A stretch of 46,739 bases of DNA from Paraphysomonas bandaiensis (lineage: Eukaryota; Protista; Chrysophyceae): positions 1 to 46,739 of the forward strand of contig CBFFRP010000661.1 in assembly GCA_965644295.1 (NCBI GenBank). The letters are read 5' to 3'. The notes under the pieces were generated by a model, which worked only from the letters and a program-made list of their open reading frames with translations, did no database searches and was not told where the DNA came from. How positions within the stretch are numbered: the first letter of the stretch is position 1; each line of letters starts with the position of its first letter. Both the position numbers and the translations under genes were made by a program. Below, piece after piece: positions 2,231 to 30,945 of this stretch.

Positions 2231-4054
2231 AGAAGCCTGAGACTGACTGCTCTCACCATCCTCAACATTTTGTACTCTATCCTCCAGTATTTGCATCCTG
2301 CTGCTGAGGTTAGACACTGCAGTAGCCACCTCTGTAAAAGACTGAGACATGGCACGAACTGTGTCCAAAATCTCCTGGTTTGGATTGATGTTTGGAGCAG
2401 AAGACTCCTGAACAACATCCTGCACACCTCCAGCAGCATCTTGTTTGGTTTCACCACTACCAGCGGCTTCCTGATCTTTCCCAGGAGTTTTCTTGCCGCC
2501 TCTCCTCGTTTTACCAGTCGGAGTAGACATGGTTAATGAGAAGGACTTCCGCCTCAAAGACTATATCCACCAAACTTTTCCCTAACACACTGAGACAAGC
2601 AACCCTGGCAACTCCTAGAACCACTGACCCAGAACTCAACAACACACCAAGACACCACAAGACAAATCCCAAAGACAACCCTGCGTAAGAATCCAAAAAC
2701 TCAACACTCAACACTCAAACCCGTTGAACCCGTCGGATTTGTACAAGTGACAACAGTTAACACACAGGCGGTATCCACGGTCGATTGACTTCGAAAAGAA
2801 CCGAATTTCCCCAGTCACCACACTGTGTATCAAACAATCACCACTGAACAAAGAGCCTAGAGAACAACTACTGACAACTCACACCCAGAGAACAACAGAC
2901 AACCAACAACCACAAGCAACCGAAGGCAACAGACAACAAGCCCAAAGAATCAAGCCCAAAGAAGCGTGTCGCAGTTAGTTTCTTATAAGAGTGTGAAACA
3001 ACAGCGCAAAGACAGAAATTTCTGTACGAGCAGTAAAGTAAATATTTACTATAACAACACCCGGTTTGATAACCAGGGTGTTGGCTCGTAAACAATAAAA
3101 CTACAATAACACCTACACTGAACCAACAAAGAACAGTAATAACGGTATTATTATTAAAACACTTTTCCAAGTTTAGACCTAAACTCAGTTAGTGACTCCC
3201 GCAAAGAGCCACCGCGCAATGGTATACCGCCGGCACCCAAGTTCACTAGCACCAAGCTTTGGTCTAACTTAAAACAAGTGATAAACACCATAGAAGCATA
3301 TATGCACACACACACACTCCTAACATGGTGCAACACACGTGGTGTCATCACACCACCACAGGTTGCGCAACTCTTCAACCAAAACTGAAAAATACACAGC
3401 AACCTGATAGGGAGTGACTCACCAGCATATGCCGAGAGTACACCGTATACTACGTATCTATACCCTACCAGAGACTGAAAACCCCACAATCCAGGAAATA
3501 CATAAATACGGTACGTATGGTACGTATAGTACGCACACCACATTGCAATCGAACCCCAATAAGCCTTGCATAAACACTCGTGCACCTCAAGTGTACAATA
3601 GCGACTTCTCTCTTATGATGGTCACATGTACTTGCCCCCCTATAGGGTAGTACGGGTAATACATGTATGTATGTATATGGAAGTATATACTGCAACTGCT
3701 ACACAGGAATACGGGCCCACATAACTTTGATATAAATTTGCAGCAGGTTTCACATCGACCGAAGTCACCAGCAGCAGATCATAGTCGTACATCATCATCA
3801 GCAGATAAAAATTGGACATCATACCCGAACGTTGGCTCAATATGTAGGTACACTGTGGTACATTACCAATGTCCAAATGGTGTTGCATAATATGTATCCT
3901 GAACACAATGAAGGTCCTAAAGCAATATATAGGGTCCTGATATAGGGTCCTAAACCAACATAGGGTCCTAAAAGTCAATGTAACCATGCATGTGACTCAA
4001 TAGCGTGATACTATAGCCACGTAGATAGGGCATGGGAAATGCCACGTGGTCACA
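2231..4054 (-). mobile_element. Truncated Gypsy family B copy: 5' LTR (3050-4054), leader and first ~100 codons of gag
   Basis: Near-identical reverse complement of 35961-37785; gag starts MSTPTGKTRRGG and breaks off at 2231. Confidence 0.92.
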
Positions 4055-4815
4055 ATATGATATGGTATATATGATATGGTATATATGATATGTTATATAT
4101 GATATGCTATATATGATATGGTATATATGATATGTTATATATGATATGTTATATATGTTATATATGATATGCTATATATGATATGCTATATATGATATGG
4201 TATATATGATATGGTATATATGATATGATATATATGATATGTTATATATGATATGGTATATATGATATGGTATATATGATATGTTATATATGATATGCTA
4301 TATATGATATGGTATATATGATATGTTATATATGAAATGTATATATATATGATATGTTATATATGATATGTTATATATGATATGGTATATATGATATGGT
4401 ATATATGATATGGTATATATGATATGGTATATATGATATGGTATATATGATATGGTATATATGATATGTTATATATGATATGCTATATATGATATGGTAT
4501 ATATGATATGTTATATATGAAATGTATATATATATGATATGTTATATATGATATGTTATATATGATATGGTATATATGATATGGTATATATGATATGGTA
4601 TATATGATATGGTATATATGATATGGTATATATGATATGGTATATATGATATGTTATATATGATATGGTATATATGATATGGTATATATGATATGTTATA
4701 TATGATATGGTATATATGATATGGTATACATGATATGGTATATATGATATGTTATATATGATATGATATATATGATATGTTATATATGATATGATATATA
4801 TGATATGTTATATAT
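4055..4815. repeat. 14-bp AT-rich satellite (ATATATGATATG[G/T/C/A]T)n, left half
   Basis: Direct reading of the tandem units. Confidence 0.97.
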
Positions 4816-5340
4816 TGTGACAAATCCGCATGTAGTCCCATATATCGAGGGGTGAGTGTATCCTGACTACAGTGAGTATACGGTGGTAGGGTAGCTGTTG
4901 GGTGGAGGTATGTGTGTACGTATGTACTTGAGTACGTGAGTACGTATATAAGTGGGTATGAGGTACGATGAGTAGTAGATAGGTACGATAAGTAGTAGAT
5001 GAGTACGACTACAGGGACAGTATTACGATAACTGTAGAGATACGATGGTGATAAGTATGATATGGGTGCTTAAGTGTAGAGCCAGCTTGTAAGTGCAAGA
5101 TTGCTATGTGAGTCACTCTTTAAGGTTATGAGAGCATAAGTAAGGAAGTTCTAATAATTGATAATTATACGATTATCAGAGCTTAAGGGTCTGTTTAATA
5201 GCATCTAACAGGCACCTAGTAAGATCAGACGTCACAGCACGTGTAAGAAGTTATCCGCGGGTATGAGCATAAGGTACCCAACTGATGCATCAACAAGGCA
5301 AAGCCCTCTGCCAAGGACCCCCACATCTCCGATCGTCTCA
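4816..5340 (+). repeat. Element A 5' LTR (525 bp)
   Basis: TGTGACAAAT...GATCGTCTCA; no differences from the 3' LTR found by eye. Confidence 0.97.
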
Positions 5341-5360: not shown

Positions 5361-8300
5361 GCCCTCGCGACCCAGTGGAATTGATCAACCACGGAGAAGA
5401 GGGGGCAGCGGAATTTCATGGCAACGATCCCAAAGTGGGGAAGAGCGAAGGGCAGAGCGATGGGAGGACGATGTGGACTGTGCACGGGACATATCACTCT
5501 CTGAGGCATGGGGGGATACCGGGACCGGCCAAGGGACGGCCCCAGTGGAAGAACCAGTCTACAACTGTGGGGACGGGAGTAGACCCAGCAACAAGGGCAG
5601 GCCAGGGATGGGGGCCACATGGGAGAGACTGTACAGAGATTGGAGTGGGGCACCAGACTATCAAGAGTCAGACGAGGGAGACCCACTAACAGGAATGCCT
5701 GTACGAGCGAGAGAGACCGGAGGGAGGGGTATGGAAACCACCAGGAAATTGTTTAGTGAGAAGATGCGGCTAGGGGAATTGGAGCAGGAAGAGAGGGAGA
5801 GCAGGCCTGCAGATATCCCATCATGGGTGTGGGTGCGACAGAAGTATGCGACAGAGAAAGCAAGAGATCAGCCGGTGATAGAGATGAAGGGGAATCCACG
5901 GACAGAGACTCTCATATTTGAGTAGGAGGGAGGCCACAGGAGCAGAGCATTGGCAGTCTCAGAGGGGAGAAAGAGGGGACGACTATCCGAAGACACCAGC
6001 CAGAAGAGATATAGGGGAAGAGTATCGAAGTACACCAGTAATGGAGGAGTTGGCTGCGATGGGAGTAGGGGCGGGAGAAGAAGACGAGGGGAGGAGATGT
6101 GGTCACAGGAGGAGTGGAGTATGGGAAGTAGGTCCAGTGGTAGACGGAGGACAGATGAGGAGGAGAGCAGACGAGATGGAGTGTGACCACGTGGCATTTC
6201 CCATGCCCTATCTACGTGGCTATAGTATCACGCTATTGAGTCACATGCATGGTTACATTGACTTTTAGGACCCTATGTTGGTTTAGGACCCTATATCAGG
6301 ACCCTATATATTGCTTTAGGACCTTCATTGTGTTCAGGATACATATTATGCAACACCAATTGGACATTGGTAATGTACCACAGTGTACCTACATATTGAG
6401 CCAACGTTCGGGTATGATGTCCAATTTTATCTGCTGATGATGATGTACGACTATGATCTGCTGCTGGTGACTTCGGTCGATGTGAAACCTGCTGCAAATT
6501 TATATCAAAGTTATGTGGGCCCGTATTCCTGGATAGCAGTTGCAGTATATAGTTCCATATAAATACATACATGTATTACCCGTACTACCCTATAGGGGGG
6601 CAAGTACATGTGACCATCATAAGAGAGAAGTCGCTATTATACACTTGAGGTGCACGAGTGTTTATGCAAGGCTTATTGGGGTTCGATTGCAAATGGGGTA
6701 TACGTACTATACGTACCGTATTTATGTATTTCCTGGATTAGGGGGTTTTCAGTCTCTGGTAGGGTATAGATACGTAGTATACGGTGTACTTTCGGCATAT
6801 GCTGGTGAGTCACTCCCTATCAGGTTGCTGTGTATTTTCAGTTTTGATTGAAGAGTTACACAACCTGTGGTGGTGAGATGATACCACGTGTGTTGCACCA
6901 TGTTAGGAGTGTGTGTGTGTGCATATATGCTTCTATGGTGTTTATCACTTGTTTTAAGTTAGACCAAAGCTTGGTGCTAGTGAACTTGGGTGCCGGCGGT
7001 ATACCATTGCGCGGTGGCTCTTTGCGGGGGTCACTAACTAAGTTTAGGTCTAGACTTAGAAAAGTGTTTTAATAATAATACCGTTATTACTGTTCTTTGT
7101 TGGTTCAGTGTAGGTGTTATAGTAGTACTATTGTTTACGAGCCAACACCCTGGTTATCAAACCGGGTGTTGTTATAGGAGGATGGATGCAGGAGGACATT
7201 CATGTAGCCTCGAAACCCGTGGGACTATCACAGGAGACACAGAACATGCTTCAGAGGAATATGCTGCTACATCTGGTGCAGCCGGTGGAACCAGAACATC
7301 AAGACAAGTATGTATGGCAGAGTGAGAGGCTGGTGAGGAGAGAGATACAGAATGTGAGAGAGAGGATGACGGAAGGCACGTACAGAGGGGTATTGGATAG
7401 ATTGATGGAGGAGTTGAAGATGGCTGCAGTGAAGGAGGGAGTACCAGATATACAAAGAGAGTTCTATGTGTCGTGGCTGGGGATCATCCAACATGCAAGG
7501 ACCAGGGGGCGCCGAGACATGGATTTCGAGTTACTGAGCCAGGAGAGGGAAAAGATACCGGAGCTGCTGGACTATATCTCACGACCAGCAATAGGTTGGC
7601 AGAGAGGTTGATGTATCTGGAGGAGCAGAAGGAGGTCATTCAGGTAGCATTGAGAGAGCTCAGGGAGATAGGACCGCCTCTGAAAAGCTATAGAGATCAG
7701 GTGAGGTGGATGAGAGGGGATAGAAGACCGAACATGGATCGATGGGTAGAAGAGTATCCAGATGAAGTGAGCAGCAGTGAGGAGACTTGGTTGACAGTAG
7801 AGAAGGAGAGTATGACAGGAAAAGAGGAGGAGGCTCGCACTAGCAAGAAAGGGGGGAGGGAAACAGAGGCCAAGGAAGAGGACGACCCTAGTCAGCTGGT
7901 GGAGAAAGCGAGGTCCAAGAGTTATGGGGAGTTCTGTCAATGGTGTATGAGGACGCCAGGAGTGGTGGATAAGATCACCGCGGAGCTGCGGCAGAGGTGT
8001 GAAGAGCAGGTGGAGATGGCCAAAGTATTGCCGGAAATGAGGGAACATTTGAGGAAGCTACCCATACCGCACTGGGTACAGTCTGGGAAGCCAGCGGCCC
8101 ATATTGGATATCCCCAAGTAGATTTTCCCACAGGGAGCACCAGGTTAGACTGTATTATGATATTCAGTGGAATAGTATCTACGGCCCACATGGCTCAGTG
8201 GTCGCCGATGAAGTTATGCCTACACCTGATGACAGGAGCTCCGTTTAAAGGGGAGTTGGGAAGGAAATATGCTACGAGGGTACAACATGGGGAGAGTGGT

Positions 8301-9300
8301 TTCAAGTCGACCTGTTCAGCGGTGGAGACCGATGTGGTGACGTGGGGGGTGGAGGTGTTTAAGTTTATGATTAGGTTCACCTCCATTTTTGGCATCCAAG
8401 TGGGGAAGGAGGTGCTGCAGAGGGAAGTGGAAGAATTCCAGATGGACGAGACATCGTTAGAGAAGTTCGACGAAAGCTTCGCAGAATTAAGACACAAGAT
8501 CATACAGGTGGGCGACGACAATATAGCGGAGCAACTGTACAGACGATTTAGGATGAAGACCGCAGGACGGCCATTAGGGAATTTGGTGAGACAAGGAGTT
8601 GATGCAGAGATCGAGATGGATCGGAGGATAGGCCTGGTGGACATGAAGAGCGAGGAGTATATTGTGAATTGTGTGCAGAAAGTGGTTGGGAAGCTGATGG
8701 ATACATATCCCAATGGACAGATACCAGGAGTCACGGGATCGCACAAGAAGACAGTAAAGGCGCATGGAGCTTACCAGGAAGGAGGAGAAAGAGATCAGGG
8801 GGCAGAGACGGATAAGCCGGAAGGGAGGAGAGAGACAGGCACCGGGAGCGGAGGAGGCTACACGGTACCACGAGGGAAGAATGGGTGGGTGCTGTGCAAC
8901 TGGTGTGGATTTGAGCATTCCAAGCGGGGAGAGTGTTTCTACAGATTGAGGGATACATCTGGCAAATGGAAGGGGTATCAACCAGAGAAATTCACGCGGT
9001 TTGAAATTCGGGCGTACCAAGAAATTGTAAGGAAAATGGAGGAGTCTCGGTCAGCATGGAGTACATTCACGGATGAGGAGAAGAAGGCTTTCCACGCCGA
9101 AGTCTCGCGCCTGAAGGAGAAGAATTTGCAAGCGTTTGTCAGAATGAATCACGCTAGGGTAGAGATGTCTGAAGCAGAGGAGGAGTGGGATGAAGACTGG
9201 TACGAGGAGGACGGGGCAGAGAGAGGGCAGGGACAGGAGGACAAACCAGTTAGGGTCAGCTTAGCCCATACATCGGTGACAGAGGCAGGAATCAACGGGA
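5361..9300 (+). pseudogene. gag: Element A gag region, disrupted
   Basis: The frame of the 5263/5950 ORFs joins the 7186 ORF once the solo LTR and one TSD copy are removed (..RRDG|GWMQEDIH). There is an in-frame TAG at 5923 and a frameshift near 7590. Zn knuckle CNWCGFEHSKRGEC at ~8895-8935. Confidence 0.75.
6182..7176 (+). mobile_element. Solo LTR of Gypsy family B inserted in element A gag
   Basis: Matches LTRs 3050-4054 and 35961-36966; flanked by the 4-bp TSD GGAG (6178-6181 and 7177-7180). Confidence 0.95.
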
Positions 9301-12300
9301 AGCCAGACTCTCTGACCATGTGGTGTGGGGTGGCCCAAGTCGAGGGAGATCGGATGCCTATGGTATTGCATGTGGATCCCGGATCTGATTGGAAGTTTAT
9401 GCATGAAGGGCTGGCTAAGGAGATGGGCTTGCCAATCACAGTGTTACCACAGCATCAACGTTATCGTATTATGGGAGCTACAGGGGGTGATGGTCAACCA
9501 GAGGAGGTCACTTCATATACCACCTCTTGAGAATGGAGGTGGAAGGCGTACAATATTATGGGGAAATGCATGGACGGTTGCAAACCGGACCGCCGGTCAA
9601 AGGGATATGGGAGAGAAGGTTTGATCTAGTACCAGGACTGACGATCTCAGCACTGTGGGGAGGCTCGGATGCGATTGAGCTTAAGAAACATCGAGCGTTC
9701 GTGGTTACTACGGAGTCAGGGATTGAGGTGGTGATGAGTGGACGGTCATACGCGGGGTCATGTGAGTGGATTGGAAAACAAAGAAGTCCTATTCAGGAGG
9801 CCAGGATATATCAGTTTATGGAGGGGGTTCGTCGGGCCAATGGAGTACGGAGAGCACACAGAGCGTGTCTACAGCGAGCCACCATCCCTGCAAATTCAGT
9901 CCAATTTGTACCAGTTCACAAGATGGAGACTTCACCTCTCGCGTCGTCAATTGTAACGGTAGTCCGACAGGATGTGCCGAAAGGGATCATAGCGGGGAAG
10001 TGGAGAGAGGTAGTACGCATTCCGGATGTGACGTCCTGCACAGGAACTCATGGGGTGTGGGTGGAAAATTGGTCATCCGAGCCAGTTAAGTTACATCGGT
10101 CGGCAATCAGCGTAGAAATACAGCCGGTATATCAGATGCCGCGATATACGAATGAGGATCTGGATGAGCAAGAGGACCAGGAAGAGGTACGGGCACATAC
10201 CACGCGAGTAGTAGAAGCGACTCCACAATCCACTGAATGTCCGCCAGAGTTCAAGCAACCGTGGACGGCTCTATGGCACTGGATGAGTCCAGATGATCAA
10301 GCGCACTATGTAGCAATCCGAGAGGAGTACCCGGAGGAGCGGCGCGCAGACGTAATCTGGGAAATCATAGATCATCTGGATATTGCCAGGGACGATATAG
10401 CTATGACCTTACTGTGGTCAACGGAGATATGGGATCCAGGGGGAGCGGGATATCATCCAGTGGAGACACCATGGAGACCTAGTCAGGTCCTAGATTTGGG
10501 GGAGGAAAGTTGTGAGGATGAGGACCCAGTAGCGGAGAAGAAGAGACAGGAGTGGAAGAATAGGGTTAGAGGGAGAGAAGGGAAGTGGAGAATATGCGTG
10601 AAAGATGGACAACCAACCCAGCGAGCGATTTTACTGGCTCGATGTGTAGCGTGGGCGAATGTGCTAGTGCATCCGGATCCCGACAACCCGAAAAAATTAA
10701 GAAATTATCAGACAGGAATCAGAACCACGGATGACAAACCAGTGTTGTGTCGACCGAGGAGATACAATGATGTAGAGAAAGCATTCATGAAGGCAAAAGC
10801 GAGGATAGGGAAGAGAGAACGAAAGGTGGAACCAGCGGAGCCAGGGGCGTGGGCATCAGCGTTGGTACTAATACCATATAGGGATAGAATTGAAAAGTTC
10901 AAGGAAAAATGGGGGGAGCATGCCAGGGAGGCTATGTGGGACCCGAGGAATGAACAAGAGGTGGCTACCTTCTACCGACAAACCATAGATTGCAGAGAAG
11001 TGAATGCAAAGACGTTACCGGATGTATTTCCACTGCCGAGGATTGATGATCTGTTGGACCAAGTGAAAAAGGGAACGAAGCACTTCTCGGTTGGGGATAT
11101 CAAGGATGCGTTCTGGGTGGTAGACTTGGAGAAGGGAAGTAGAGCAAAATTTGCATATAGAACACATGACGAGTACCTTCAGCCAACAAGGATGGTGCAA
11201 GGAGGAAGAAACAGTGCTAACGAATGGGCAAGGATCGTGGCGGAGACATTCCAATGCATTAGTCAGGAGGAGGCGTTAGTATATCAAGATGATGTCATGG
11301 TACATTCGAGGGAGTTCTGGGAGCACTATGGATCCATAGGGAAGGTGTTCCAACAACTTGAGAGCAAGGACTTGGTGTTCAAGGTGACGAAGGTGCATCT
11401 GAACTACCCAAGCATGGCATTTTTGGGTTTTATGGTGGATGAAAAGGGGAAATACCCCAACCCAGAAAAGGTCAAAGCGATAGACGAATTGGAATATCCG
11501 AAGAAGGATGTATCAGCTGTAAGAGCGTTTATAGGACTGACCTTATATTACCGACATTTCATCAAGGACTATGCGAGTATTGTGGCACCGTTGCATGACC
11601 TAACAAGGAAAGGAGTAAACGTAGCGGAGGCATGGAATGAGGAACACGAGGAAGCCGTGGATAGACTGAAAGAGGAACTGATGGCCCATCCATGCTTGCG
11701 TCTGGTGGATAATACCAAGCCATTTCAAGTAAGGGTAGACGCATGCCGGAAGGGTCGAGGGATAGGAGCTATATTGCTTCAGCAGGATGAGGAAGAGGAG
11801 TGGCATCCAGTAGCATATTGGAGTAAGATTTTGAATGCTACGGAAAGGGAATATTCGCCGACGGAGATTGAGTGTAAAGCATTGCATGACTGTATGATGT
11901 ATTAGGATCTGTACTTGCGATGTGCAAATGAAGTGGACGTGTACACGGATCATAATGCATTAGTATATATGTACAAGGGTCAGACCGCGTCTAATAATGG
12001 GAGGCTCATGAGATATCTGCTGGATCTGATGGGAATGAGTTTCCACCTCCATTATAAGCAAGGGACAAAGCATATGGATGCAGATGCGGTATCGAGGCTA
12101 TTGAGAAAGGGAGAAGAGCCACAATATTTGACGGCTGATGACCTGGAGTGGGACAAAGGGGTAGTGACGGAAGAGGACATCTTGCTGGCACAGGACATGG
12201 AAAGGAAGAGAGCCAAGAGGATAGCACGCGCTGAGAGAAGAAGGGCAGAAGTAAGGGAGGCAGAGGAGGTGAGGAAACAGTATAAGGAACAGGCCCAAGA

Positions 12301-12538
12301 GAATAGAGAGATCAGGAGAGCTAACGTAGTGAGAGGGTGGCGTGAAGGAGTTCAGATGACGGAGGAAGAGAGGAGGAGACATGTGAGCAAATATGGACGG
12401 TCGGATAGGACACTGAGGGAAAAGCCGAAGCAGCAGATGAGACCAGCGAGAGAGGTGCCTCATAGGGATGACTGGAAGGAAGTTGAACTGGATAGAGATT
12501 TATGGGCTTTGCGGGACAAGAAGGCCACCGGTTACAAT

Positions 12539-12904
12539 AGGGTGACTGTCATGCCGTCGACGTTGAGAGGAGCAGGCAGAGGCCTGTTCGCAACAAAAGA
12601 AATAAGAGAAGATGGTATAATATGTGAATATGATGGCGAGCGGTGGTCTGCGGAAGAAGCAAAACAGAGGAGGGCCTCAGAGGATACGGATTATGTGTTC
12701 GCGGCTAAGAAGAGAGGGAGCGAGGTGGTATATGTGGATGCGAGGGAGGCAACATCCTGTTGGGGAAGGTTCGCGAACGATCCCCTGGACGACACACTAG
12801 TCAATGCCAAGATAGTGATGAGGGGAAAGCGACTGTTCGTGGTAGCAACTACAGAGATACTGCCAGGAGAAGAAGTGTTAGTTTCATATGGGAATGACTA
12901 TTGG
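12539..12904 (+). other. SET domain embedded in Gypsy Pol, between RNase H and integrase
   Basis: STLRGAGRGLFATKEI...IICEYDGE...DY...VDA...GRFANDPL...ATTEILPGEEVLVSYGNDYW contains the SET GxG, EYxG, RFxNH-equivalent and EELxxxY motifs. Confidence 0.9.
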
Positions 12905-14242
12905 ATGGGAAGGCTGGATAAGTTGGAACTAGAGCAAGCTGCACGAGTAAGGGGAGAATGGGAGAAGAAAGAGAAACGGAGGATGAGAGAAGGAGGAGAG
13001 GAGGATCACGCCAAGAAGTCCGTTGAGATGGCAAGGCCTGAGGAAGTGACGGAAGGAACGGGAAGGCGAAGGAGAAGCCAGAGAATGAAAAGGAAAGAGC
13101 GCAAGGAGAGAGAAGAGGCCGTTGAGATTTATGCATATGATAATGTACTACAGTGTGAGGAACTGGCGGAGGAATTACAGTTCCTGGTAGGCCGGAAATT
13201 TGTGGATGATGAAAATGGGCATTTGTATGAAGTGAGATCCATATTCTACTCCAAGGAAGCAAGAGCAGTGATGGGTTACCGGCGATCGCTAACGGGAAGG
13301 ACATACAGACATGATGATGAAGCATTTCCAGTATATGGACCGATGGGGTTGTATGCGCTGACGGACTTGTATCGAGTAGAAGGGAGTAGTGAGTCGGAGA
13401 GATGGCCAGTATGCGGGCGAGAGTGGAGGGATGCTCAGTATAAGGAGGAAGGGTTACGGTCATTAATGGAACAGATTCAGGAGGGCGAAGAGTTAGAGGT
13501 TAAGGATGAGGGAGTATACAGGATGATTAAGATTGAGGAGTCATTGGTATTACACCATCAGTTGAGGATGGGGGAACGCAAGATATGGAGGAGAGTGGTG
13601 CCTAGGGAGTTGACGGACACATGTATGAGGATTTTCCATGAGGGTATTGGACACGTAGGGGCCACGAGAGCAGTAGGGACGATGAAGTTGCATTACCACT
13701 GGGAGGGGCAACGAGCGGAGCATACTGATTATTGTCGTTCATGCATAGCATGCAAGCTGCGGAAAGCTTACAGGTGTAGACCAAAGGTGCCAGTGATGGA
13801 GTATCCAGAGGTTAAGCAACCCATGGGCAGGCTACATATTGATCTGACAGGGGAGCTGCCGGAGACGCCATGGGGAAATAAGTATATACTAGTGTGTAAG
13901 GATTTTAAGTCCAAATATGTGTGGATGTTTCCAATTGCGGATAAGAGAGCGGAGACAGTGGCTCACGTGTTAGTCACACAGATATACAACGCGTTTGGAG
14001 CACCACAGATGCTAATTAGCGACCGAGGACGGGAATTTGCGAATAAACTAGATAAACAGATCAGTAAGCTGTATCGGATCACAAGAGTATGTACAACTCC
14101 ACAGAATCCGAGGTCGAATGGTCTGGTGGAGAATATGAACGCCACATTGAAGGACCAACTGCATCACTATGTGAATGTACAGCATTCGGATTGGGATGTA
14201 TATCTGTCTACGATCCAATTATTGTATAACTCAACGGTGAAT

Positions 14243-15334
14243 AAGTCTGTGGCATGACCAAACCTGGTCAACTGGGGGCGACCTGGTCTAATGACAACTT
14301 TTTGCTAGAACCCTACTTTTAAGAGCGTAGAACTATAATAAAATGTTTTCTATGCGAATGGAAAAGTTTTAGAATAGTTTAGACTATTTTTCATCACATA
14401 ATACTAATTTAGAGTTGACATTATACACATCAAATACATACATATATATATTAAGTCGTAACTGATAACACACAATATATACAAAACAATCAGTTCGAAT
14501 AATTAACCGCGGCCCTCTTCCGCTTTCCTACAATCACATTTTTTACTTTTACATTTCCATCTTCCCATTCATCGTCTTCAGGAACAAGAACAAGCTCAAA
14601 TCTCCCCGCAGTCGACGGTCCTTTCTCTTTAGGTCTTCGTGTAGGTATGGTCCTCAAGAACTTTCCCCGTACCTTCTTGTCAAACCTGCCATCTTTGTAG
14701 AGTACATCGTACACGCGATGCGGCCCATCTTCGTAACAGGCTGTTATTTTACCATGCAAATTGTGAATATTCCGCACAACATCACCATCACTGTACACCG
14801 GATCCGGCAAAGACACTACACTTGTATCACTATCACTCTCAGCACCATCACTCTCAATACTATCGCTCTCAGCAACATCACTCTCACTTGCAGGCTCAAC
14901 TTCCTCAACACTATCTGCAAGCTCTACCGAACGAGGTGGGCGCACAACCAACGCAGATTCGGTCGTGGATGCTGTTTTCTTCTTTTTGGAAGAATTGTTC
15001 TTAGGAGCAGACCTTTCACTGGGAGCAGCCTTCTTGGGAACAGCTGCCCTACTTGCACGTGGTTTACGAGTTGTCACGACAATGTGGGCGGCAGCAGGAG
15101 GCTTTCCCTCCACCAAAACACCATACTTATCTTTAACAAGGACGCGAGGGGGAACCTCTTTGCTCTTTTGGCTTGGCTTTCGCTTTCCGGAATGAATAAT
15201 GCTATCGGTCGTTTCAACTTCTCTCATCGGAGGCAAATCATTTCCATCAATTTGTATACACGATGGTCGTACCTCATCACCTGGCATATAGTCCGGATTT
15301 ACATCAGTGTAGAAGAGCTCGTTCTGGAATGGTT
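14243..15334 (-). mobile_element. 1.1-kb unclassified insertion in element A integrase
   Basis: Removing 14243-15336 restores NSTVN-AATGYTPMYMMFGRE in frame. AT flanks both sides; there are no TIRs. Hairpin TGACCA-aacc-TGGTCA lies 12 nt from the left end. Confidence 0.85.
14490..15287 (-). CDS. Basic/acidic low-complexity protein (fragment) with a Tudor-like domain
   Basis: YSDGDVVRNIHNLHGKITACYEDGPHRVYDVLYKDGRFDKKVRGKFLR resembles a Tudor barrel; the C-terminus reads KRKRAAVNY. Confidence 0.55.
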   Translation of the reverse strand: MPGDEVRPSCIQIDGNDLPPMREVETTDSIIHSGKRKPSQKSKEVPPRVLVKDKYGVLVEGKPPAAAHIVVTTRKPRASRAAVPKKAAPSERSAPKNNSSKKKKTASTTESALVVRPPRSVELADSVEEVEPASESDVAESDSIESDGAESDSDTSVVSLPDPVYSDGDVVRNIHNLHGKITACYEDGPHRVYDVLYKDGRFDKKVRGKFLRTIPTRRPKEKGPSTAGRFELVLVPEDDEWEDGNVKVKNVIVGKRKRAAVNYSN

Positions 15335-15871
15335 ATGCAGCTACAGGTTATACACCCATGTATATGATGTTTGGACGGGAGGCATCAACGCCAGAGATGG
15401 TGGGCATTGATGAGAGGATGGTGGAGAGGCAGGCGGTGGTAGATGGGGATGAGGACTGGATTATAAATTTGGTGGAGGCATTGGAGACCGCCTGGACTGC
15501 AGTGACAGCTAGAACAAGGAAGAACTGGGCCCGAATGAATAGGGGGATTACCTCATATGCAGCTGAGCTGAGAGAGGCGACTGGTGACAAGACAGGCGGT
15601 GGCAAGGTGAGACAGCTACGCTATCGGGAGTATCAGGAGGGGGACCGATTCTATAGGAGACGGTATCCAGTCAGGACATTTGCCTCGGCCAAGGAGAAGG
15701 AGAAGTATAAAATTTCTATGAAGCTACAGCCACGGTTTGAGGGACCGTTTGTGGTTACGAAGAGGATTAATGCGGTGTTGTATGAGGCCGAGTTCTATGG
15801 TAAGAGGGGCCGGGTACATGCAGTGAATATGAAACCCGAGAGCGCTTAAGACCTGGTCAGGTCGTAGATTC

Positions 15872-15879: not shown

Positions 15880-16404
15880 TGTGACAAATCCGCATGTAGT
15901 CCCATATATCGAGGGGTGAGTGTATCCTGACTACAGTGAGTATACGGTGGTAGGGTAGCTGTTGGGTGGAGGTATGTGTGTACGTATGTACTTGAGTACG
16001 TGAGTACGTATATAAGTGGGTATGAGGTACGATGAGTAGTAGATAGGTACGATAAGTAGTAGATGAGTACGACTACAGGGACAGTATTACGATAACTGTA
16101 GAGATACGATGGTGATAAGTATGATATGGGTGCTTAAGTGTAGAGCCAGCTTGTAAGTGCAAGATTGCTATGTGAGTCACTCTTTAAGGTTATGAGAGCA
16201 TAAGTAAGGAAGTTCTAATAATTGATAATTATACGATTATCAGAGCTTAAGGGTCTGTTTAATAGCATCTAACAGGCACCTAGTAAGATCAGACGTCACA
16301 GCACGTGTAAGAAGTTATCCGCGGGTATGAGCATAAGGTACCCAACTGATGCATCAACAAGGCAAAGCCCTCTGCCAAGGACCCCCACATCTCCGATCGT
16401 CTCA
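15880..16404 (+). repeat. Element A 3' LTR
   Basis: Copy of 4816-5340. Confidence 0.97.
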
Positions 16405-16985
16405 ATATGATATGGTATATATGATATGGTATATATGATATGCTATATATGATATGGTATATATGATATGTTATATATGATATGGTATATATATATGATA
16501 TGTTATATATGATATGTTATATATGATATGTTATATATGATATGCTATATATGATATGTTATATATGATATGGTTTATATGTTATATATGATATGTTATG
16601 TATGATATGTTATATATGATATGGTATATATGATATGTTATATATGATATGTTATATATGATATGTTATATATGATATGTTATATATGATATGTTATATA
16701 TGATATGTTATATATGATATGCTATATATGATATGGTATATATGATATGCTATATATGATATGATGGTATATATGATATGTTATATATGATATGGTATAT
16801 ATATATGATATGGTATATATGATATGGTATATATGATATGTTATATATGATATGTTATATATGATATGGTTTATATGATATGGTATGTATGATATGGTAT
16901 ATATGATATGTTATATATGATATGTTATATATGATATGGTTTATATGATATGGTATGTATGATATGGTATATATGATATGTTTTA
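16405..16985. repeat. 14-bp AT-rich satellite, right half
   Basis: Same unit as 4055-4815; split by element A. Confidence 0.97.
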
Positions 16986-19300
16986 TATCTTGGTGTCCGG
17001 CAGGTCCCCTTCACGGCCACTGACACTGTCTCGCACAAGTGGTGCCTCGACTACATCGCCGCCACCACCATCTGTCTCCGACACAAATGCGCCACACCCG
17101 ACTGCAAACTACTAGTCCTCAACATGCAAGTCCTACCTACCCTATATTACAAGGCCGCAAAGGCCTCTCCTGGACTTACAACAAATACCTCGAGATTCAC
17201 AGAGCGTACGCCCAAGCGGCCCGCGCAATACTTCGACTGCCCCCCGGATACCCCACAGCCCTCATTTACCTGCCCACCACGTACAAGGGCTTGGACTGCG
17301 CAAATTCTCGACTCATGCGCAACTCCAAAAATGGCACACCCTACAACGGGCAATTGCACTCGGCGGACAACCAAGGTCCGCGGCCCACACCCTCCTGCAA
17401 CGCGCACCGCACCTCCCCCAGATAATTGACACCTTCATACAAAGTCTTGTCACCTGGGGCTCCCAACTTGGTATTCGATTCACAAGCCTCCGACCAATAC
17501 AGAAACACAATAAATGATATCAGATCTCGACTCGCACTACACGACGACCCACCACATACCTAAGGCGCCTTTTTCACAGATGAATCGTACAAAAGTACAG
17601 ACCTCACCCCTGCACACTTGCTAGGTGACTCACACCCCAAACCCAATACACATTCGGGGGGTGCCGCAATAGTCTGGCTCCCGCCGAAACACCAATGGAC
17701 CAACAGAAAGGTCAAAATACTTAGACTCACCGCACCTCATACGGACACCCCGAGAATACACGCCTACTGCTATGAAACTCGTGCCACCACGGCAACCCTT
17801 ACGGTGACAGGTTCCTCCCACTACACAATCTCCCTCTGCACAGACTGTCAAGCCGTCCACACTAGAGCTGTAGAGGCCCTCTCTGGCTCACGGAGAGCAC
17901 TTGGTTCTAAATCCCAAGGTATATTCTACAAATGTTTAGCTGCCCTTACCCACACTAGACGCCCCATACACTGGGTACGCTCGCATCCAGAACGTCACAC
18001 CACAGACAAAACCAAATGGACCTTTCGAGAAATGGGTATCTTCATTGCTGATGCGGCAGCAAGTGGACATTGGAAACCTCTTGATGATCTCATTGGAACC
18101 CGTAACGTCACCACGGCCAACGTCACTCAGCTCATGGAAGACTTTCTCACTGCCGGACAGTGGACTGGCGTCGCTATGACATACATCTCCACTCCGACAT
18201 AGGACCACTTCTCGGGGACGCACTCGACCTTAGCTTCAAACACGACCTCCAGCAATACACCACCACCCGGGACGGTGTCTACGGCCCCCTTTCGAATTGT
18301 GATCCCCTTTACTGGACACAGAGCGGAGCAAGGCTACCATATAAACTCCACCCTCTCCGCACCCACAACACCCCCCACAGTGCCCGAGAAACTGACTATA
18401 CGTCTGGGACAAGATATACACAAACGGTCGGAACGTGCAAAAGGAAAACAAGAGAACGAAGCTACAGCTGTGCGAAATGTACCGACTGCAACCATGACCA
18501 CGACAGCATCGCACATATATATGGTCCTAGAGTGCTCTCACCATGAATGACGTCGCACAAGCTAGGGAAGAAATATACCACCAACACCGCCAGGCCATTG
18601 ACAAAGCCAAGAACATCACAGTCCTCCGACCACGGTTTTCCACTGTTCTCACCAAAATCTCCTCCGCAGCCTGGAATCCCAATACCCCCCAAGTTGAGAG
18701 ATACTGGACGGCCTCCCAACTAGCAAACGCATTCGGCCACCACATCTCCACTGCCATACAACCCCAGGAATTCCACCAGCTCGAAAAACTAATAATAAAA
18801 ATACTCAGATCACTTTACAATGGCTTCCGCATGCTTAAGGACAGAGGAAGGCGGCATATCCAAGCTCTCACTCCCAGCATACAGACGACAACGCACACTA
18901 CCGAACCAAGCCAATACGTTCACAGGCCCACCACGCCCAACCCGCCAATACTAAACCTCCTCCAGGTCTCATTCACCCCCAGAAATCCTTGAACCAAACC
19001 ACCACCCCCACGTACTCCCACCACGTACAAAAGACACGCTCATCACATTCCCCACGCGGCCTCAACCACCTACAGCGCGCTCTCTCCTCCTTACTACACA
19101 ATTCAGTCTCGCCTCAAGACTCCGAAGCGCATAGTCCCCACCTCTAGTACAACAGAGGTGTTACCTAAAGGTCGGCCCCCTGACTAAATTCATTAGCCGG
19201 AACAGTTGCACCATGGTGCTCGCAGCAATGCACAACTAGTTCCGGGACGCTAACAGATAGGTGATATTGCTTGTTACCTACAGTACCACTGACATAAAGA
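16986..19300 (+). pseudogene. 5'-truncated, degenerate LINE related to the 39537-46679 element (end of RT, RNase H, C-terminal Zn finger, 3' UTR)
   Basis: Fragments YLGV..., CKLLVLNMQVLPTL, LRLPPGYPTALIYLP, GGAAIVWLPPK, WVRSHPER, ADAAASG, CTDCNH and PKGRPP align with the intact LINE ORF; many frameshifts. The right boundary is approximate. Confidence 0.92.
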
Positions 19301-20724: not shown

Positions 20725-21285
20725 CTACTCCTGGGTTGGGCCATCCACAGCGAGGATTTCGGGGTGGTGCTTGGTGATCGTATCATCCACGAGAATCATG
20801 CTGGATTCATCGAATTCCCATTGACGACCCCACGCATAAACCATGTAATTATCAAAGCCATATAATTGCTTGTTGAGGTCAAATCGAACGGTAATTTTCT
20901 TGCGACTCCCGCCCTTGTGGTACCAACGGAGGTAGGTAAAAGGAACAACATAGCTGGAAGTTTCCCAGTCTGGAAGCTGTAGGGATTCATAGAAAAGGTC
21001 CCCAAAGAATCTCAAATCCACATATACTGTATCTCCCGGTGATACTGAGGTAATGTTTTCCTTGCGCTTGTCGCGTATGAATCTTGTGGCCATATCCGTG
21101 TCCAAGGATAGGTGAAAAAGGAAAGGCTTACTCTGGCAGAAGTCATAGTACGCCTCACATAGGATATCAGGGGTATACGGAATATCAAGAACTTCTCCAT
21201 CAGCATACTTAACCTTGAAAGTCATCGAAGTCCTCTTTCTGCAGTCTCCCTTGTAGCCAAGAATCTTATCGACCATGAACTGCAG
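20725..21285 (-). CDS. Element C integrase C-terminus: chromodomain plus an extra ~110-aa domain, frameshifted from pol
   Basis: QFMVDKILGYKG...FKVKYADGE. Alignment with the homolog at 35320-35960 shows a small deletion (about MRDHE) at ~21283 that causes the frameshift. Confidence 0.8.
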   Translation of the reverse strand: MQFMVDKILGYKGDCRKRTSMTFKVKYADGEVLDIPYTPDILCEAYYDFCQSKPFLFHLSLDTDMATRFIRDKRKENITSVSPGDTVYVDLRFFGDLFYESLQLPDWETSSYVVPFTYLRWYHKGGSRKKITVRFDLNKQLYGFDNYMVYAWGRQWEFDESSMILVDDTITKHHPEILAVDGPTQE

Positions 21286-24200
21286 CATTGAAAGCCTCCT
21301 CTGCCGAACCATAGAATAGCTCAAGATCCTCAACCGAAAACTTTTTTATTGCTCCACTTATCAGATTCCTACAATCCACATCGTTTTTGTATTGATGGAC
21401 AACTTGCATTGGACCCTTATGACGACACGCCAGTTTAGGATGTGGTTTTGGACCAGCATCAAACAAGACAAAATCTCCTGGCGCATACATATTTTGGGGC
21501 ATAAGTCTCGCTTGACTCGCTCTTTCTTCAACCAACTGATCTTGAAATTTCTTCGAAGCCTCTCGGAGCACTGTTAGATTCTCATTTAGCTGTTTTAGCA
21601 GCATGTGGGACGGTTCACCCTCACAATCTTTCAAAAGATCCTTATATACCGCGTCCACGGATCCAAATACAAGCTCAAACGGCGTAAATCCAGTCTCTGA
21701 GGACACATGATCATTGAGAATGTATTGTACGGAAGGAATCTTTGTAACATCATCGAAGATATCTTGGATCCTTGTGTCAAATACTAGTGCTCGCAAATGC
21801 CGCACCACTTCCTTTATTGGCCTCTCTGTACCGTTAGCATGTTTATCTGCAATGCTAAACACATGGCGCATTCCCATGAGCTGAACTAACTCTGCGAATA
21901 ACTTCGAGGTAAGGTCAGTACCCAAATCTGAGATAATCATGTCAGTATGTCCAAAATTGCTCCAATATATCCACACAGAAGCAGCTAAATTTTTCGCTGT
22001 AACGCCTATTATCGCTCTGAGAAATGCATGTTTGCTGAACAAATTAACAATGACCAGGATATGTGATTCACCGTTCTTCCCTGCTGGTGTTATCTTCACA
22101 GCATCTATTCCAATGACACTTCTCGCATGTGGGGGTTTCAGTGTTCTAGGGATCTTAATTAAACGGTTTTTACGCTCTCTCCGTGTTTTCTCACAGCACG
22201 CACACGAACTCACAAAGTCTGCTATTTCTTTATATGGAATCTGATGCCCAGGACACAGTTTATTCAGCCGATTCCACATCTCTTTAGCTCCCCAGTGGCC
22301 TGATTGGGCATTATGTACTTCCTCCATAAGTTCCTGGGCCCTTAATCTAGATACAGGCTCAGGGGCTGTCTCTGATATATCAGTTAGGTCGAATACGTTC
22401 ATGAGGGCGTGGAATGTCCAATCATCATCACTATCCTCTTCACCCATTGTTCTATCATGATCCGAATCATCCATGGAGATCATAAATAAACGCGATAGGG
22501 CGTCGGCCACAGTATTTTCTCTTCCACTGATATGTTGTACAACAAAATCAAACGATTGTAGATAAACTCTCCATCTGACTATTTTCGGCACTTCTGACGC
22601 CTCCATCCATCTTAGATTGTTATGGTCTGTCTGGACGATGAAGTGTTTCCCAATCAGGTAATACGCAAAATGTCTCACCGCATAAAAGATGGCATATCCT
22701 TCTTGCTCAATTGTTGACCATCTCATAGCTTCAGGTGAAAATTTCTTTGAACACATGGCTATAACTTGGTATAAAACTTCACCATTTTCGAGGCGTTTTA
22801 CTTGGAATAGGACTGCTCCAATACCGAACTCACTAGCATCCGTACGCAAGAACCACTCCAATTCGTAGTCTGGGTAAAAGACTGAACAAGCCTCTTGAAG
22901 TCCAGTTTTATAGTCCTCCCATTCCTGCCTATAATCTATTTTCCACGTGGTTTCGTCCCAATTAAAATCTTGCTTTGTAAGGTCCGTCAAATGCTTCACC
23001 TTGTCCTTGTAGTTCTCAACAAATGGCGCAAAGAACACACCCATACCCAGCATTGACCTCACCTTTTTCTGACGATTCCCACTCTCCGGAAAAGGAATTT
23101 TCAAAATAGCTTCCTTCCTATCATTGGTCAACTCATACGAATGATGTCTGCAATTGTAACCAAAAAAATGAACTTCTCTTTTCCCTAACCATGTCTTAGC
23201 AAATTTCAATACAACGCTGTGTTCAATGCAACGATCAAGGAACAAGTCGAGCTTCCTATACGCATCATCATAATCCTTTGCCAGTATTAAAACGTTGTCG
23301 AACAGACATATAGCCCAGTCAAAATCACCAAATAATTCCATAATAGTTTGTTGAAGCTTTCCACTGCCCGGTCCTATACCCTCAGGAACATATAACGGCT
23401 GGAATTGACCCCATGGGGTCTGAATCGATAGTTTGGCCGAGGTTTGCTCAGTCACGGGTATCTGGTGGAATGCGTTCGTTAGATCAATGTCTAGGAAGAT
23501 TTCATACTCAATAATACGATCCAGCTGATGACGCACATTCGGAATATAGTAATGTGGGATCTCCATATATTTATTGATGATTCGATAGTCACCACATAGT
23601 CTGATAAACGGCTTAGTCGCCTTAGGGGCCACTGTGAGACATGAAGCCCAGGGTGATGAACTTTTTACGTAAATATACCCTCTCAGACGCATAAACTCTT
23701 GTTCAGTAGCCTCATAGAGCCTAGGATTGATAGGTCGTGCCTTTGGTTTCAGTCGGTGGGGTAGATCCTCTCTAAATTTTATATCCAATGGCTCGATCCC
23801 CTTCATACCGGTCCACTTCTCCGGTACAAAAGCATTCACGCCTTTCCCACGTAGAAGTTCTTCAACTTTAGTGGATTTTCGAAATTCAGGGTCAATATGG
23901 TCCTCGAACATACTTATAAACTCACTGATTGCATCTTCTCGCGATTTACCCAGAAATAGTGACACATCCCCAAAACTCGTAGGCAGAGGGTTATCCTTTT
24001 CTTCAGAAGCTTCTTCTGCTGATGAAAAACTCCACGGCTGTAGGTATTGTTCGACGTCTGACACATGCAAAGTCTGCAACTCTGGTAAATGCATATTCTC
24101 GGTCCTAACTGCCTCAACTTCTGATTTAAAGAACTGCCATAGTTCTCCAAGAATCGCCGGCATACCTATGATGACTTCGTTTTGTAGCATCTCAAGGACA

Positions 24201-24622
24201 ACGAAATCTCCGGAGTATATAATATCTTGCTGTTCACTCGATATCTTCATGTCTAATTGGATTGTTGTATCACTTTCAAGTCTTGTCTTGTTGTCAGCCA
24301 GCCCGATCTTCAAATTCTTTTTAATAATTCTCTTGTTCTCTAGTTGTTCTCTTATTTTTGTGAAAATTCTCTTACTGATGTAGTTCGCACACAGGGCTCC
24401 AGTGTCGAACAAAACTCTAATCTTATCTGACATTACAACATTATTATCAAAATTGCTGCTTAACAGCTGTCCATTAAAATGCACCATGTCCGGGGTAGCT
24501 TGAAATTTTCTCACCAAATCCCCCACAATGGCACATAACTCATGTGGAGGCATCTTCGACTCATCAGGGTTCGCAAGTATGTTTTCATTATCCTGGTGAG
24601 TGCCGGAGACGCCTCCTACCAG
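21266..24622 (-). CDS. pol: Element C pol (protease, RT, RNase H, integrase)
   Basis: LFDTGA; RLCGDYR, DLTNAFHQ, LFDN; TDASEFG..EQE..TDHNNL..ADALSR; H-H-CxxC, GIDAV, SDLG, GTER; HKGP. Confidence 0.95.
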   Translation of the reverse strand: MVGGVSGTHQDNENILANPDESKMPPHELCAIVGDLVRKFQATPDMVHFNGQLLSSNFDNNVVMSDKIRVLFDTGALCANYISKRIFTKIREQLENKRIIKKNLKIGLADNKTRLESDTTIQLDMKISSEQQDIIYSGDFVVLEMLQNEVIIGMPAILGELWQFFKSEVEAVRTENMHLPELQTLHVSDVEQYLQPWSFSSAEEASEEKDNPLPTSFGDVSLFLGKSREDAISEFISMFEDHIDPEFRKSTKVEELLRGKGVNAFVPEKWTGMKGIEPLDIKFREDLPHRLKPKARPINPRLYEATEQEFMRLRGYIYVKSSSPWASCLTVAPKATKPFIRLCGDYRIINKYMEIPHYYIPNVRHQLDRIIEYEIFLDIDLTNAFHQIPVTEQTSAKLSIQTPWGQFQPLYVPEGIGPGSGKLQQTIMELFGDFDWAICLFDNVLILAKDYDDAYRKLDLFLDRCIEHSVVLKFAKTWLGKREVHFFGYNCRHHSYELTNDRKEAILKIPFPESGNRQKKVRSMLGMGVFFAPFVENYKDKVKHLTDLTKQDFNWDETTWKIDYRQEWEDYKTGLQEACSVFYPDYELEWFLRTDASEFGIGAVLFQVKRLENGEVLYQVIAMCSKKFSPEAMRWSTIEQEGYAIFYAVRHFAYYLIGKHFIVQTDHNNLRWMEASEVPKIVRWRVYLQSFDFVVQHISGRENTVADALSRLFMISMDDSDHDRTMGEEDSDDDWTFHALMNVFDLTDISETAPEPVSRLRAQELMEEVHNAQSGHWGAKEMWNRLNKLCPGHQIPYKEIADFVSSCACCEKTRRERKNRLIKIPRTLKPPHARSVIGIDAVKITPAGKNGESHILVIVNLFSKHAFLRAIIGVTAKNLAASVWIYWSNFGHTDMIISDLGTDLTSKLFAELVQLMGMRHVFSIADKHANGTERPIKEVVRHLRALVFDTRIQDIFDDVTKIPSVQYILNDHVSSETGFTPFELVFGSVDAVYKDLLKDCEGEPSHMLLKQLNENLTVLREASKKFQDQLVEERASQARLMPQNMYAPGDFVLFDAGPKPHPKLACRHKGPMQVVHQYKNDVDCRNLISGAIKKFSVEDLELFYGSAEEAFNAAVHGR

Positions 24623-28863: not shown

Positions 28864-29381
28864 CGAATCAGCAAATTTCAACAAGTCTTTGGTCGAAGGT
28901 ATCGCGGAACGATCGTTGAAGGAATTGAAGGAAGTATAGTTACACAAGTATAACCTGCCTTCATCATTGACACAATATATATTATCAAAGTACCACTTCG
29001 AGGTACAGTAGGCACTCAGAAAACGTTGTCCCAGTACCAGCAATAATTTAGCTTGTACTTCCCGCACACAGCTACACGACACTCAAACGATCGGCACTTA
29101 TCAAGAAAATACTGCTTCGGCTGCTATGCATTCTTCTTTTTATCACCTCTTTCATACAATCGATCATAGTGTCCTGCGCGTCGTCCAAGAATGTACCATT
29201 CAACGCATGGTAAATACAGTACACCCCTCACAAGCGCAACAACATATAATATATATGACACATACGACGCAACAGCATGCCTGGTAGGCTGTTTTCAGAA
29301 GACATTTCAGTTATTATTGTGATATAATATATATTTTAATCAATAAAATATATTATATATACACAATACACGAATAACAAT

Positions 29382-30478
29382 ACACACTTCCGTCAAACTA
29401 GTCAGCTGATGCTGTAACCTGCTGACGCGAAGCACACTACCGTCAAACTAGTCAGCTGATGCTGTAACCTGCTGACGCGAAGCACACTACCGTCAAACTA
29501 GTCAGCTGATGCTGTAACCTGCTGACGCGAAGCACACTACCGTCAAACTAGTCAGCTAATGCTGTAACCTGCTGACGCGAAGCACACTACCGTCAAACTA
29601 GTCAGCTAATGCTGTAACCTGCTGACGCGAAGCACACTACCGTCAAACTAGTCAGCTGATGCTGTAACCTGCTGACGCGAAGCACACTACCGTCAAACTA
29701 GTCAGCTAATGCTGTAACCTGCTGACGCGAAGCACACTACCGTCAAACTAGTCAGCTAATGCTGTAACCTGCTGACGCGAAGCACACTACCGTCAAACTA
29801 GTCAGCTAATGCTGTAACCTGCTGACGCGAAGCACACTACCGTCAAACTAGTCAGCTAATGCTGTAACCTGCTGACGCGAAGCACACTACCGTCAAACTA
29901 GTCAGCTAATGCTGTAACCTGCTGACGCGAAGCACACTACCGTCAAACTAGTCAGCTAATGCTGTAACCTGCTGACGCGAAGCACACTACCGTCAAACTA
30001 GTCAGCTGATGCTGTAACCTGCTGACGCGAAGCACACTACCGTCAAACTAGTCAGCTAATGCTGTAACCTGCTGACGCGAAGCACACTACCGTCAAACTA
30101 GTCAGCTAATGCTGTAACCTGCTGACGCGAAGCACACTACCGTCAAACTAGTCAGCTAATGCTGTAACCTGCTGACGCGAAGCACACTACCGTCAAACTA
30201 GTCAGCTAATGCTGTAACCTGCTGACGCGAAGCACACTACCGTCAAACTAGTCAGCTAATGCTGTAACCTGCTGACGCGAAGCACACTACCGTCAAACTA
30301 GTCAGCTAATGCTGTAACCTGCTGACGCGAAGCACACTACCGTCAAACTAGTCAGCTGATGCTGTAACCTGCTGACGCGAAGCACACTACCGTCAAACTA
30401 GTCAGCTAATGCTGTAACCTGCTGACGCGAAGCACACTACCACCAAACTAGTCACCATTGCTGTGTTCTGTTGGTGAC
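29382..30478. repeat. Tandem array of ~21 near-identical 50-bp units plus one diverged terminal unit
   Basis: Unit ACACTACCGTCAAACTAGTCAGCT[A/G]ATGCTGTAACCTGCTGACGCGAAGC; essentially one polymorphic site. Confidence 0.97.
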
Positions 30479-30945
30479 AATATCACGATAAGCAGAGAGT
30501 GGAGGGCACTGAAATTCTCTATACCTGTTGCGAACAACTCCACAGCTCACACAGCAAGCAGATTGAAATGATGAAGATAGCGCAACAAACTGAGAGATTA
30601 TGATGCACTGCAGAGAGTTTGATCTAAATGATGGCGATATTACTAGAGCCTCAGGCTATGTATGTATGTATGTATTATGGATGAGTGGAATATATATGTG
30701 TGTATGTATATACATGTATGCATGTGATGATGATGAATGAGGTCGAAGTGAAGTGAAGTCGAAGTGTTGAACTAAAAAAAGAGGATCGTATTCGGAATTC
30801 GGAATTTCTTCCATCATTTTTTTGAGTTGAGTTGCTGTTTTGTCATCAAATCCACTCCTCTCAGTGATATCACACACATACACATACAAACATATAAACA
30901 TATAGACATATATATACACATATATACAGCATACATGTTAAAGTA

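Follow-up and report, generated by a model that had tools for sequence, protein, structure and literature searches.

We report here that a Ty3/gypsy-type (Metaviridae-type) long terminal repeat (LTR) retrotransposon in the genome of Paraphysomonas bandaiensis carries, between the RNase H and the integrase of its Pol polyprotein, a putative SET methyltransferase domain followed by a small block predicted to fold as an SH3-like barrel. The element occupies positions 4816-16404 of contig CBFFRP010000661.1, which was analysed over its whole length of 46,739 nucleotides and is hereafter referred to as the window. This copy is one slightly damaged member of an old, successful gypsy lineage, the Pol of which has the order reverse transcriptase (RT) - RNase H - SET - SH3-like barrel - integrase. 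The initial annotation had placed a SET domain, charged linkers and a globular block in one open reading frame (ORF) between the residues DAVSR at the end of RNase H (nt 12083-12097) and the integrase, an arrangement that was confirmed in ORF 11915..14257 on the forward strand (stop-to-stop 11906-14254, 780-783 open codons). The frame is indeed open across the insert but not across the whole Pol, which is interrupted by a stop codon (11903-11905) and by a 1092-bp insertion (14243-15334). Pfam searches returned RVT_1 (nt 10973-11434), RT_RNaseH (from nt 11633), Integrase_H2C2, rve and, below its cutoff (26.8 bits against 30, in ORF 15358-15849), SH3_Tf2-1. The order RT - RNase H - integrase is that of gypsy elements, except that RNase H and the zinc finger of the integrase are set apart by about 450-500 additional residues. 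The size of ~480 aa originally given for the insert is a fair estimate, as this gap measures ~520 aa in the window element and in its sister copy C476, in contrast to ~70 aa in the SET-less gypsy element at 21269-24553 (minus strand) of the window, which served for comparison.

The insert was used as a query against the 62.6-Mb assembly from which the window derives. Its absence from sister copies had been named at the outset as the result that would reveal a one-off in-frame capture; instead, the insert was found at 97-99%, 85%, 47% and 34-36% identity as well as in Pols from outside this assembly. The insert-bearing copies in the assembly comprise near-identical ones (97-99%), a group at 85-86%, a lineage at 44-49% (C654, C656), and a lineage at 34-36% represented by eight or more copies, each with an open Pol of 1521-1526 aa in which RT, RNase H, SET and integrase follow one another. 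Profiles derived from the SET alignment (A1) and the block alignment (A2) located both domains at ~15 genome loci representing at least three lineages, and ~50 more SET loci without the block were observed in very long open frames of the same genome. Moreover, 56 external protein clusters matched the insert at 30-46% identity, 50 of which have a precomputed Pfam SET call. Four of the other six are EEP-type clusters. The remaining two, P0055 and P0056, were checked with the profile and lack the SET domain; a degenerate SET was considered for both and rejected, as the profile comparison detected no remnant. The external clusters derive mostly from marine metagenome contigs, with one of the 56 from Amoebophrya sp. 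AT5.2 (EukProt). The public sequencing runs that contain the element are likewise marine, and contigs of independent public runs cover the insert. The occurrence in sister copies, distant lineages and external Pols indicates that the insert is a heritable part of the element.

The ratio of nonsynonymous to synonymous substitution rates (dN/dS) was determined from a codon alignment of the window copy with C476. Values of 0.05 for the SET domain and 0.03 for the block were obtained, next to 0.02 for the pre-RT region and 0.01 each for RT-RNase H and the integrase; the first linker gave 0.05 and the second 0.28. In the SET domain, 20 nucleotide differences between the two copies translate into only three amino-acid changes. 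SET and block are thus under purifying selection no weaker than that acting on RT and integrase. The element therefore needs both for its propagation, and most of the divergence arose in lineages that were still transposing. Taken together, these comparisons show the putative SET domain and the predicted barrel to be heritable parts of Pol that are conserved across lineages at 30-45% identity. The alternative of a single in-frame acquisition of host sequence, or of an assembly artefact, confined to the window copy has nothing in its favour and was rejected on account of this recurrence and selection. It is contradicted by ~15 genome loci at 34-99% identity and 50 or more external Pols, by the constraint on the insert and by its coverage in independent public runs, and we regard its probability as practically nil.

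A Pol tree was calculated from the RT-RNase H and integrase core, leaving out the insert. The SET-bearing Pols fell into three supported clades, namely those of the window, of C432 and of the EEP-bearing Pols (SH-aLRT 100). P0055, which has no SET, branches as sister of the window clade (SH-aLRT 99), and P0056, likewise devoid of SET, is placed on a long basal branch. The simplest reading of this tree, the rooting of which depends on one very long outgroup branch, would be that the SET domain was acquired anciently by a lineage already holding the block and was occasionally lost later. Many of the external Pols are 2300-2650 aa long and contain an EEP (AP-type) endonuclease upstream of RT, together with RNase H, SET and a full integrase. 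EEP and integrase were observed in one Pol in P0014, in ~30 other metagenome proteins and in L023:1719-9275; the presence of both an endonuclease and an integrase in a single retroelement Pol is unusual.

The SET domain matched Pfam model PF00856 with an E value of 1.5e-13 (51.5 bits against a curated cutoff of 22.4) and, in addition, the PRDM2_PR model PF21549 (30.4 bits against 27). The Pfam models for zinc clusters (Pre-SET/AWS) gave no match in its flanks, and the domain is compact (~150 aa). In a comparison of the SET family profile with the PDB, EZH2 (E 1.2e-10) and EHMT2 (4.5e-9) were retrieved, and further matches comprised Set1, PRDM12, the chlorella-virus vSET (1n3j), KMT2 and KMT5A. 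The AlphaFold model of the domain (mean predicted local distance difference test, pLDDT, 90.8; predicted template modelling score, pTM, 0.84) matched SET8 (7e-10), PRDM9 (3e-9) and MLL1 in Foldseek, each with a probability of 1.00, and also LegAS4 and several PR domains, which confirms the SET fold. The window SET contains the motifs AGRGLFA, EYDGE, RFANDP and SYGNDYW. Among 55 aligned SET sequences, the motifs AGxGLFA, (C/E)YxG and YGxDYW and the residues G27, G29, Y45, G47, N103, Y131, Y135 and W136 are invariant or almost so. Hence, the GxG/YxG elements for binding of S-adenosylmethionine (SAM) and the catalytic tyrosines are retained, and the EZH2 motif has its tyrosine at the position aligned to Y131. 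YGxDYW at the C-terminus of the domain is similar to the corresponding motif of vSET. We infer that the SET domain of the gypsy Pol is an active lysine methyltransferase.

At one position the domain departs from the canonical pattern. The RFINH(S/C) motif reads R(F/Y)AND(P), so that the asparagine is kept, the histidine is replaced by aspartate, and the canonical N-H-(S/C) is not found. N-D is present in more than 90% of the family members and in 102 of 155 related SET domains, as compared to a single domain with N-H. It is common to the SET domains of gypsy elements, elements of the long interspersed nuclear element (LINE) type and EEP-gypsy elements, and to SET proteins that stand alone (150-200 aa), for instance P0108, encoded on a gene-dense metagenome contig. 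As N-D is shared across the subfamily, including the stand-alone proteins, it represents a subtype signature rather than decay. Mutation of the histidine in the NHS motif of SUV39H1 is reported to abolish activity; with this histidine replaced, catalysis by the element SET is not assured. One could therefore envisage a catalytically dead SET that binds histone tails or other proteins and tethers the pre-integration complex, like the chromodomain of chromoviruses. Such a role would be consistent with the N-D signature and with the fit to the PR-domain model, and several members of the PR-domain family have little or no activity. However, a pure binding module would not need the SAM-pocket motifs GxG and YxG and both tyrosines of YGxDYW, all of which are invariant, and PRDM9, an active enzyme that is also devoid of the canonical histidine, is among the best structural matches. 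We consider a dead tether unlikely.

The SET profile retrieved 25 cluster representatives at E <=1e-30 and 1367 at <=1e-10 from the whole library. A tree of the 155 SET domains was poorly resolved, and the SET domains of LINE and gypsy elements are not mutual nearest relatives therein. A stand-alone N-D SET protein of 156 aa (L021:3072-3542) is located on a gene-dense metagenome contig, among neighbours without any match in Pfam; the element SET may have been captured from a pool of such proteins.

The conserved block downstream of the second linker, in which the sequence LQFLVGRKF begins at aa 421 of the ORF, did not reveal a family. For all 55 members, Pfam searches remained without a match below E 0.03, a sequence profile against the PDB without one below E 0.08, and Foldseek against the PDB without one at E 0.001 or better; in the ESM Atlas, a shape search and a feature search yielded template modelling scores of at most 0.36 and scores of at most 0.83, respectively. 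The AlphaFold model (pLDDT 88) folds residues 17-93 into a small SH3-like barrel capped by helices, which fits the beta-barrel proposed in the initial annotation. Model residues 100-160 form helices and a four-stranded sheet running into the zinc finger, and this part (13415..13597) looks like an N-terminal extension of the integrase, judging from its position in the model. In VIA-align, the block matched CAP-Gly with a Z score of 5.6, the MRG15 chromo-barrel with 4.4, Tudor with 4.2, and PWWP, KOW and BAH with ~3.5-4, and VapX was retrieved as well; all these scores (<=5.6) lie beneath the stated noise level of the tool and are scattered over many SH3-like families. As the structural matches are weak and mixed, the fold is named only SH3-like. 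With such matches, the reader function that had been suggested along with the barrel is only a possibility. Readers of the Royal family (Tudor, chromo-barrel, PWWP) bind methyl-lysine through an aromatic cage in an SH3-like barrel, and the block might do likewise.

The window harbors a second SET domain in a LINE-like single ORF of 2380 aa (39537-46679, minus strand), in which SET (aa 498-602) is followed by an EEP endonuclease (669-911) and RT (1357-1634); this ORF is one of the ~50 SET loci without the block. No OTU domain was found in this ORF with Pfam at E 0.001 or better. The N-D SET subtype is thus located directly upstream of the endonuclease in the LINE-like element and upstream of the integrase in the gypsy elements. 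In both kinds of element the SET domain adjoins the enzyme that meets the target chromatin, which constitutes the strongest circumstantial support for an action of the domain at the insertion site. The recurrence of the same subtype beside the integrase of an LTR element and the endonuclease of a LINE-like element suggests a general solution, not an accident.

The element probably uses SET and barrel to act on chromatin at insertion. In its specific form, which we judge to be about evenly poised between right and wrong, this reading holds that the Pol-borne SET of the gypsy lineage is active, is delivered with the integrase and modifies the target chromatin, with the barrel serving in docking. 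The SET domain would be made within Pol and would accompany the integrase, as a fusion to the N-terminal end of the latter or within one and the same particle. Its substrate at the target nucleosome, or close to it, could be histone tails or a different protein of chromatin, and the barrel beside the integrase may help to dock the complex on chromatin. Through the methyl mark, the host might come to tolerate the new insertion (self-marking), or the insertion might be shielded from silencing. We further put forward, tentatively and with more doubt than confidence, that a widespread retrotransposon lineage of marine protists encodes its own chromatin writer beside its target-cutting enzyme and stamps each insertion with lysine methylation, the barrel acting as docking or reader module of a self-marking element.

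Several observations weigh against such an action at the insertion site. The exchange of His for Asp throughout the subfamily may affect catalysis, and the structural matches of the barrel remain in the noise. P0055 and P0056 keep the block without SET, and hence SET and barrel are no obligate pair. Two insertions were examined, the window copy in a satellite and C476 in unique-looking sequence, and they display no obvious common target. RNA support is thin, as the polyA metatranscriptome covers the element with few contigs of ~150 nt at a depth of 3-4. Finally, the variable linkers on either side of SET would permit its release as a free protein. In that case, the protease of the element would liberate the SET domain to act in trans on host silencing or restriction factors, on the Gag or integrase of the element itself, or on histones of unintegrated cDNA. 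The linkers, poorly conserved and with more than 50% charged residues, would suit such processing, and, as SET proteins of this subtype also exist in stand-alone form (150-200 aa), the domain can work on its own. For a SET working in trans, however, it would be irrelevant to lie just upstream of the enzyme that cuts DNA, as SET does in gypsy and LINE elements alike, and we deem a free SET improbable.

The capture of chromatin modules by retroelements is well established for chromodomains, PHD fingers, methyl-CpG-binding domains (MBDs) and DNA methyltransferases. Chromoviruses such as MAGGY and Tf1 are comparable to the SET element in that a gypsy Pol has acquired a chromatin-related module attached to the integrase; their chromodomain at the integrase C-terminus targets integration (as cited in bioRxiv 10.1101/2021.11.30.470311). 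In the SET element, by contrast, the module is N-terminal to the integrase and consists of a potential writer and an unclassified barrel instead of a chromodomain reader. In line with this, Pfam gave no Chromo domain match in the integrase C-terminal ORF (15358-15849) or in the full C476 Pol. Other retrotransposons have captured DNA methyltransferases or an MBD (de Mendoza et al. 2018, 2019, as cited in bioRxiv 10.1101/2021.11.30.470311). Like the SET element, they carry an epigenetic enzyme or reader, in Pol or in a separate ORF, that is conserved across copies, which suggests that the element manipulates its own chromatin state. The SET element differs from them by its putative protein-lysine methyltransferase, positioned within Pol between RNase H and integrase. 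The survey of Grau-Bove et al. lists SET methyltransferases as one class of chromatin domain fused to transposon domains; no family with the order RT-RNase H-SET-integrase is described therein, and SET does not stand beside RT_RNaseH or Integrase_H2C2 among the fusion-table rows listed (bioRxiv 10.1101/2021.11.30.470311). SETMAR, which belongs to these fusions, represents the reverse direction, a host gene that captured a transposase.

With regard to the domain itself, the minimal SETs SET8/KMT5A, PRDM9 PR/SET and vSET of Paramecium bursaria chlorella virus, which are the best structural or profile matches of the element SET, are likewise compact (~130-150 aa) and devoid of pre- and post-SET zinc clusters. 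The element SET differs from them by an identity of only 20-27%, by N-D in place of N-H and by its embedding in a retroelement polyprotein. The PRDM2_PR match is shared with PRDM proteins, but the element SET lacks C2H2 fingers and its context is a retroelement Pol. Full-text literature searches and the Amoebophrya genome paper (PMC7789003) yielded no description of a SET domain within a retroelement Pol. As far as these searches could find, a putative histone-type lysine methyltransferase that is built into Pol and under selection has not previously been described. If the SET domain is active, the element would write chromatin marks itself and not merely read them, which would bear on how insertions choose or create tolerated chromatin and how they escape or invite silencing. 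If self-marking holds true, the element would be the histone counterpart of retrotransposons carrying DNA methyltransferases. The family is abundant in marine metagenomes, and its compact SETs of ~150 aa with the unusual N-D cofactor motif, together with a new small barrel, are suited to biochemistry.

The damage in the window copy was compared with C476, which is 96% identical to it at the DNA level. The in-frame stop lies within RNase H upstream of the insert and is private to the window copy; C476 and contigs of other public runs are open at this position. The 1092-bp insertion is likewise private to the window copy, and contigs of the other runs include the junction without it. The Pol of C476 is a single uninterrupted frame of 1941 aa that comprises RT, RNase H, SET, zinc finger, rve and a sub-cutoff SH3; in its gag region, however, C476 shows frame breaks that are its own. 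Splicing out of the 1092 bp was considered and rejected, as the junction without the insertion is also present in a DNA run. The joined form is therefore a matter of copies with and without the insertion and provides no evidence for an intron. An antisense ORF of 265 aa (14490-15287) within the 1092-bp insertion has no Pfam match. The first 33 nt of the insertion are common to several genome loci, and partial copies occur elsewhere. Over its last ~750 nt the contig depth is several-fold above that of the element, in the polyA metatranscriptome as well. The contigs over this part continue into unlike sequence at 15332, and the insertion is hence a fragment of a different unit that is more abundant or is expressed.

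Table 1. Features of the SET-bearing gypsy element (window coordinates; aa positions refer to ORF 11915..14257)
Feature	Position	Strand	Remarks
Target-site duplication	4812..4815, again 16405-16408		ATAT, 4 bp
5' LTR	4816..5340	+	525 bp, TG...CA, 100% identity to 3' LTR; self-BLAST
Nested insertion in leader	6182..7176		~1 kb; without counterpart in C476
gag-like ORF	7473..9530	+	685 aa; C-terminus with loose D-x-G protease-like motif
Pol part 1	9527..11905	+	~480 aa without Pfam match, then RT, then start of RNase H
Pol part 2	11915..14257	+	End of RNase H, insert, integrase zinc finger and catalytic core
Post-RNase H segment	12098..12514	+	aa 62-200; conserved to ~aa 127, then variable charged linker
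SET domain	12515..12919	+	aa 201-335; Pfam match 12575-12892 (aa 221-326)
Second linker	12920..13135	+	aa 336-407; 57% charged, poorly conserved
Conserved block, no assigned family	13136..13414	+	Predicted SH3-like beta-barrel core (AlphaFold), nt 13160-13390
Helices and four-stranded sheet before zinc finger	13415..13597	+	AF2 secondary structure
Integrase HHCC zinc finger (Integrase_H2C2)	13598-13768	+	aa 562-618; Pfam
rve catalytic core	13817-14110	+	aa 635-732; Pfam
Secondary insertion	14243..15334		1092 bp; splits integrase; missing from C476
Integrase C-terminus	15335..15849	+	Tf2-type SH3 match ~nt 15709-15795, under Pfam cutoff
Purine tract ending GGGGGAAA	15872-15879		Directly before 3' LTR
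3' LTR	15880..16404	+	525 bp; self-BLAST

The further anatomy of the element is compiled in Table 1. In the sister copy C476 the LTRs are 547 bp long and the 4-bp target duplication reads CTTT. The gag-like ORF gave no match in Pfam, and a Pfam search of the element for a protease recognised none, even at E values up to 5. Between gag and pol, 37 nt (9491-9527) are shared by both frames, pol being in the -1 frame, as expected of a frameshift junction. In the first linker (aa 91-200), 51% of the residues are charged.

The element splits a 14-bp satellite (unit ATATGATATGGTAT, ~95 copies in total) located at 4055-4815 and 16405-16988. The nested insertion in the leader is 95-97% identical to window positions 3049-4054 (inverted) and 35961-36964, and the region 2231-4057 is an inverted copy of 35958-37785. 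In addition, a 50-bp tandem repeat with ~22 or more near-identical units is present at 29233-30582 of the window.

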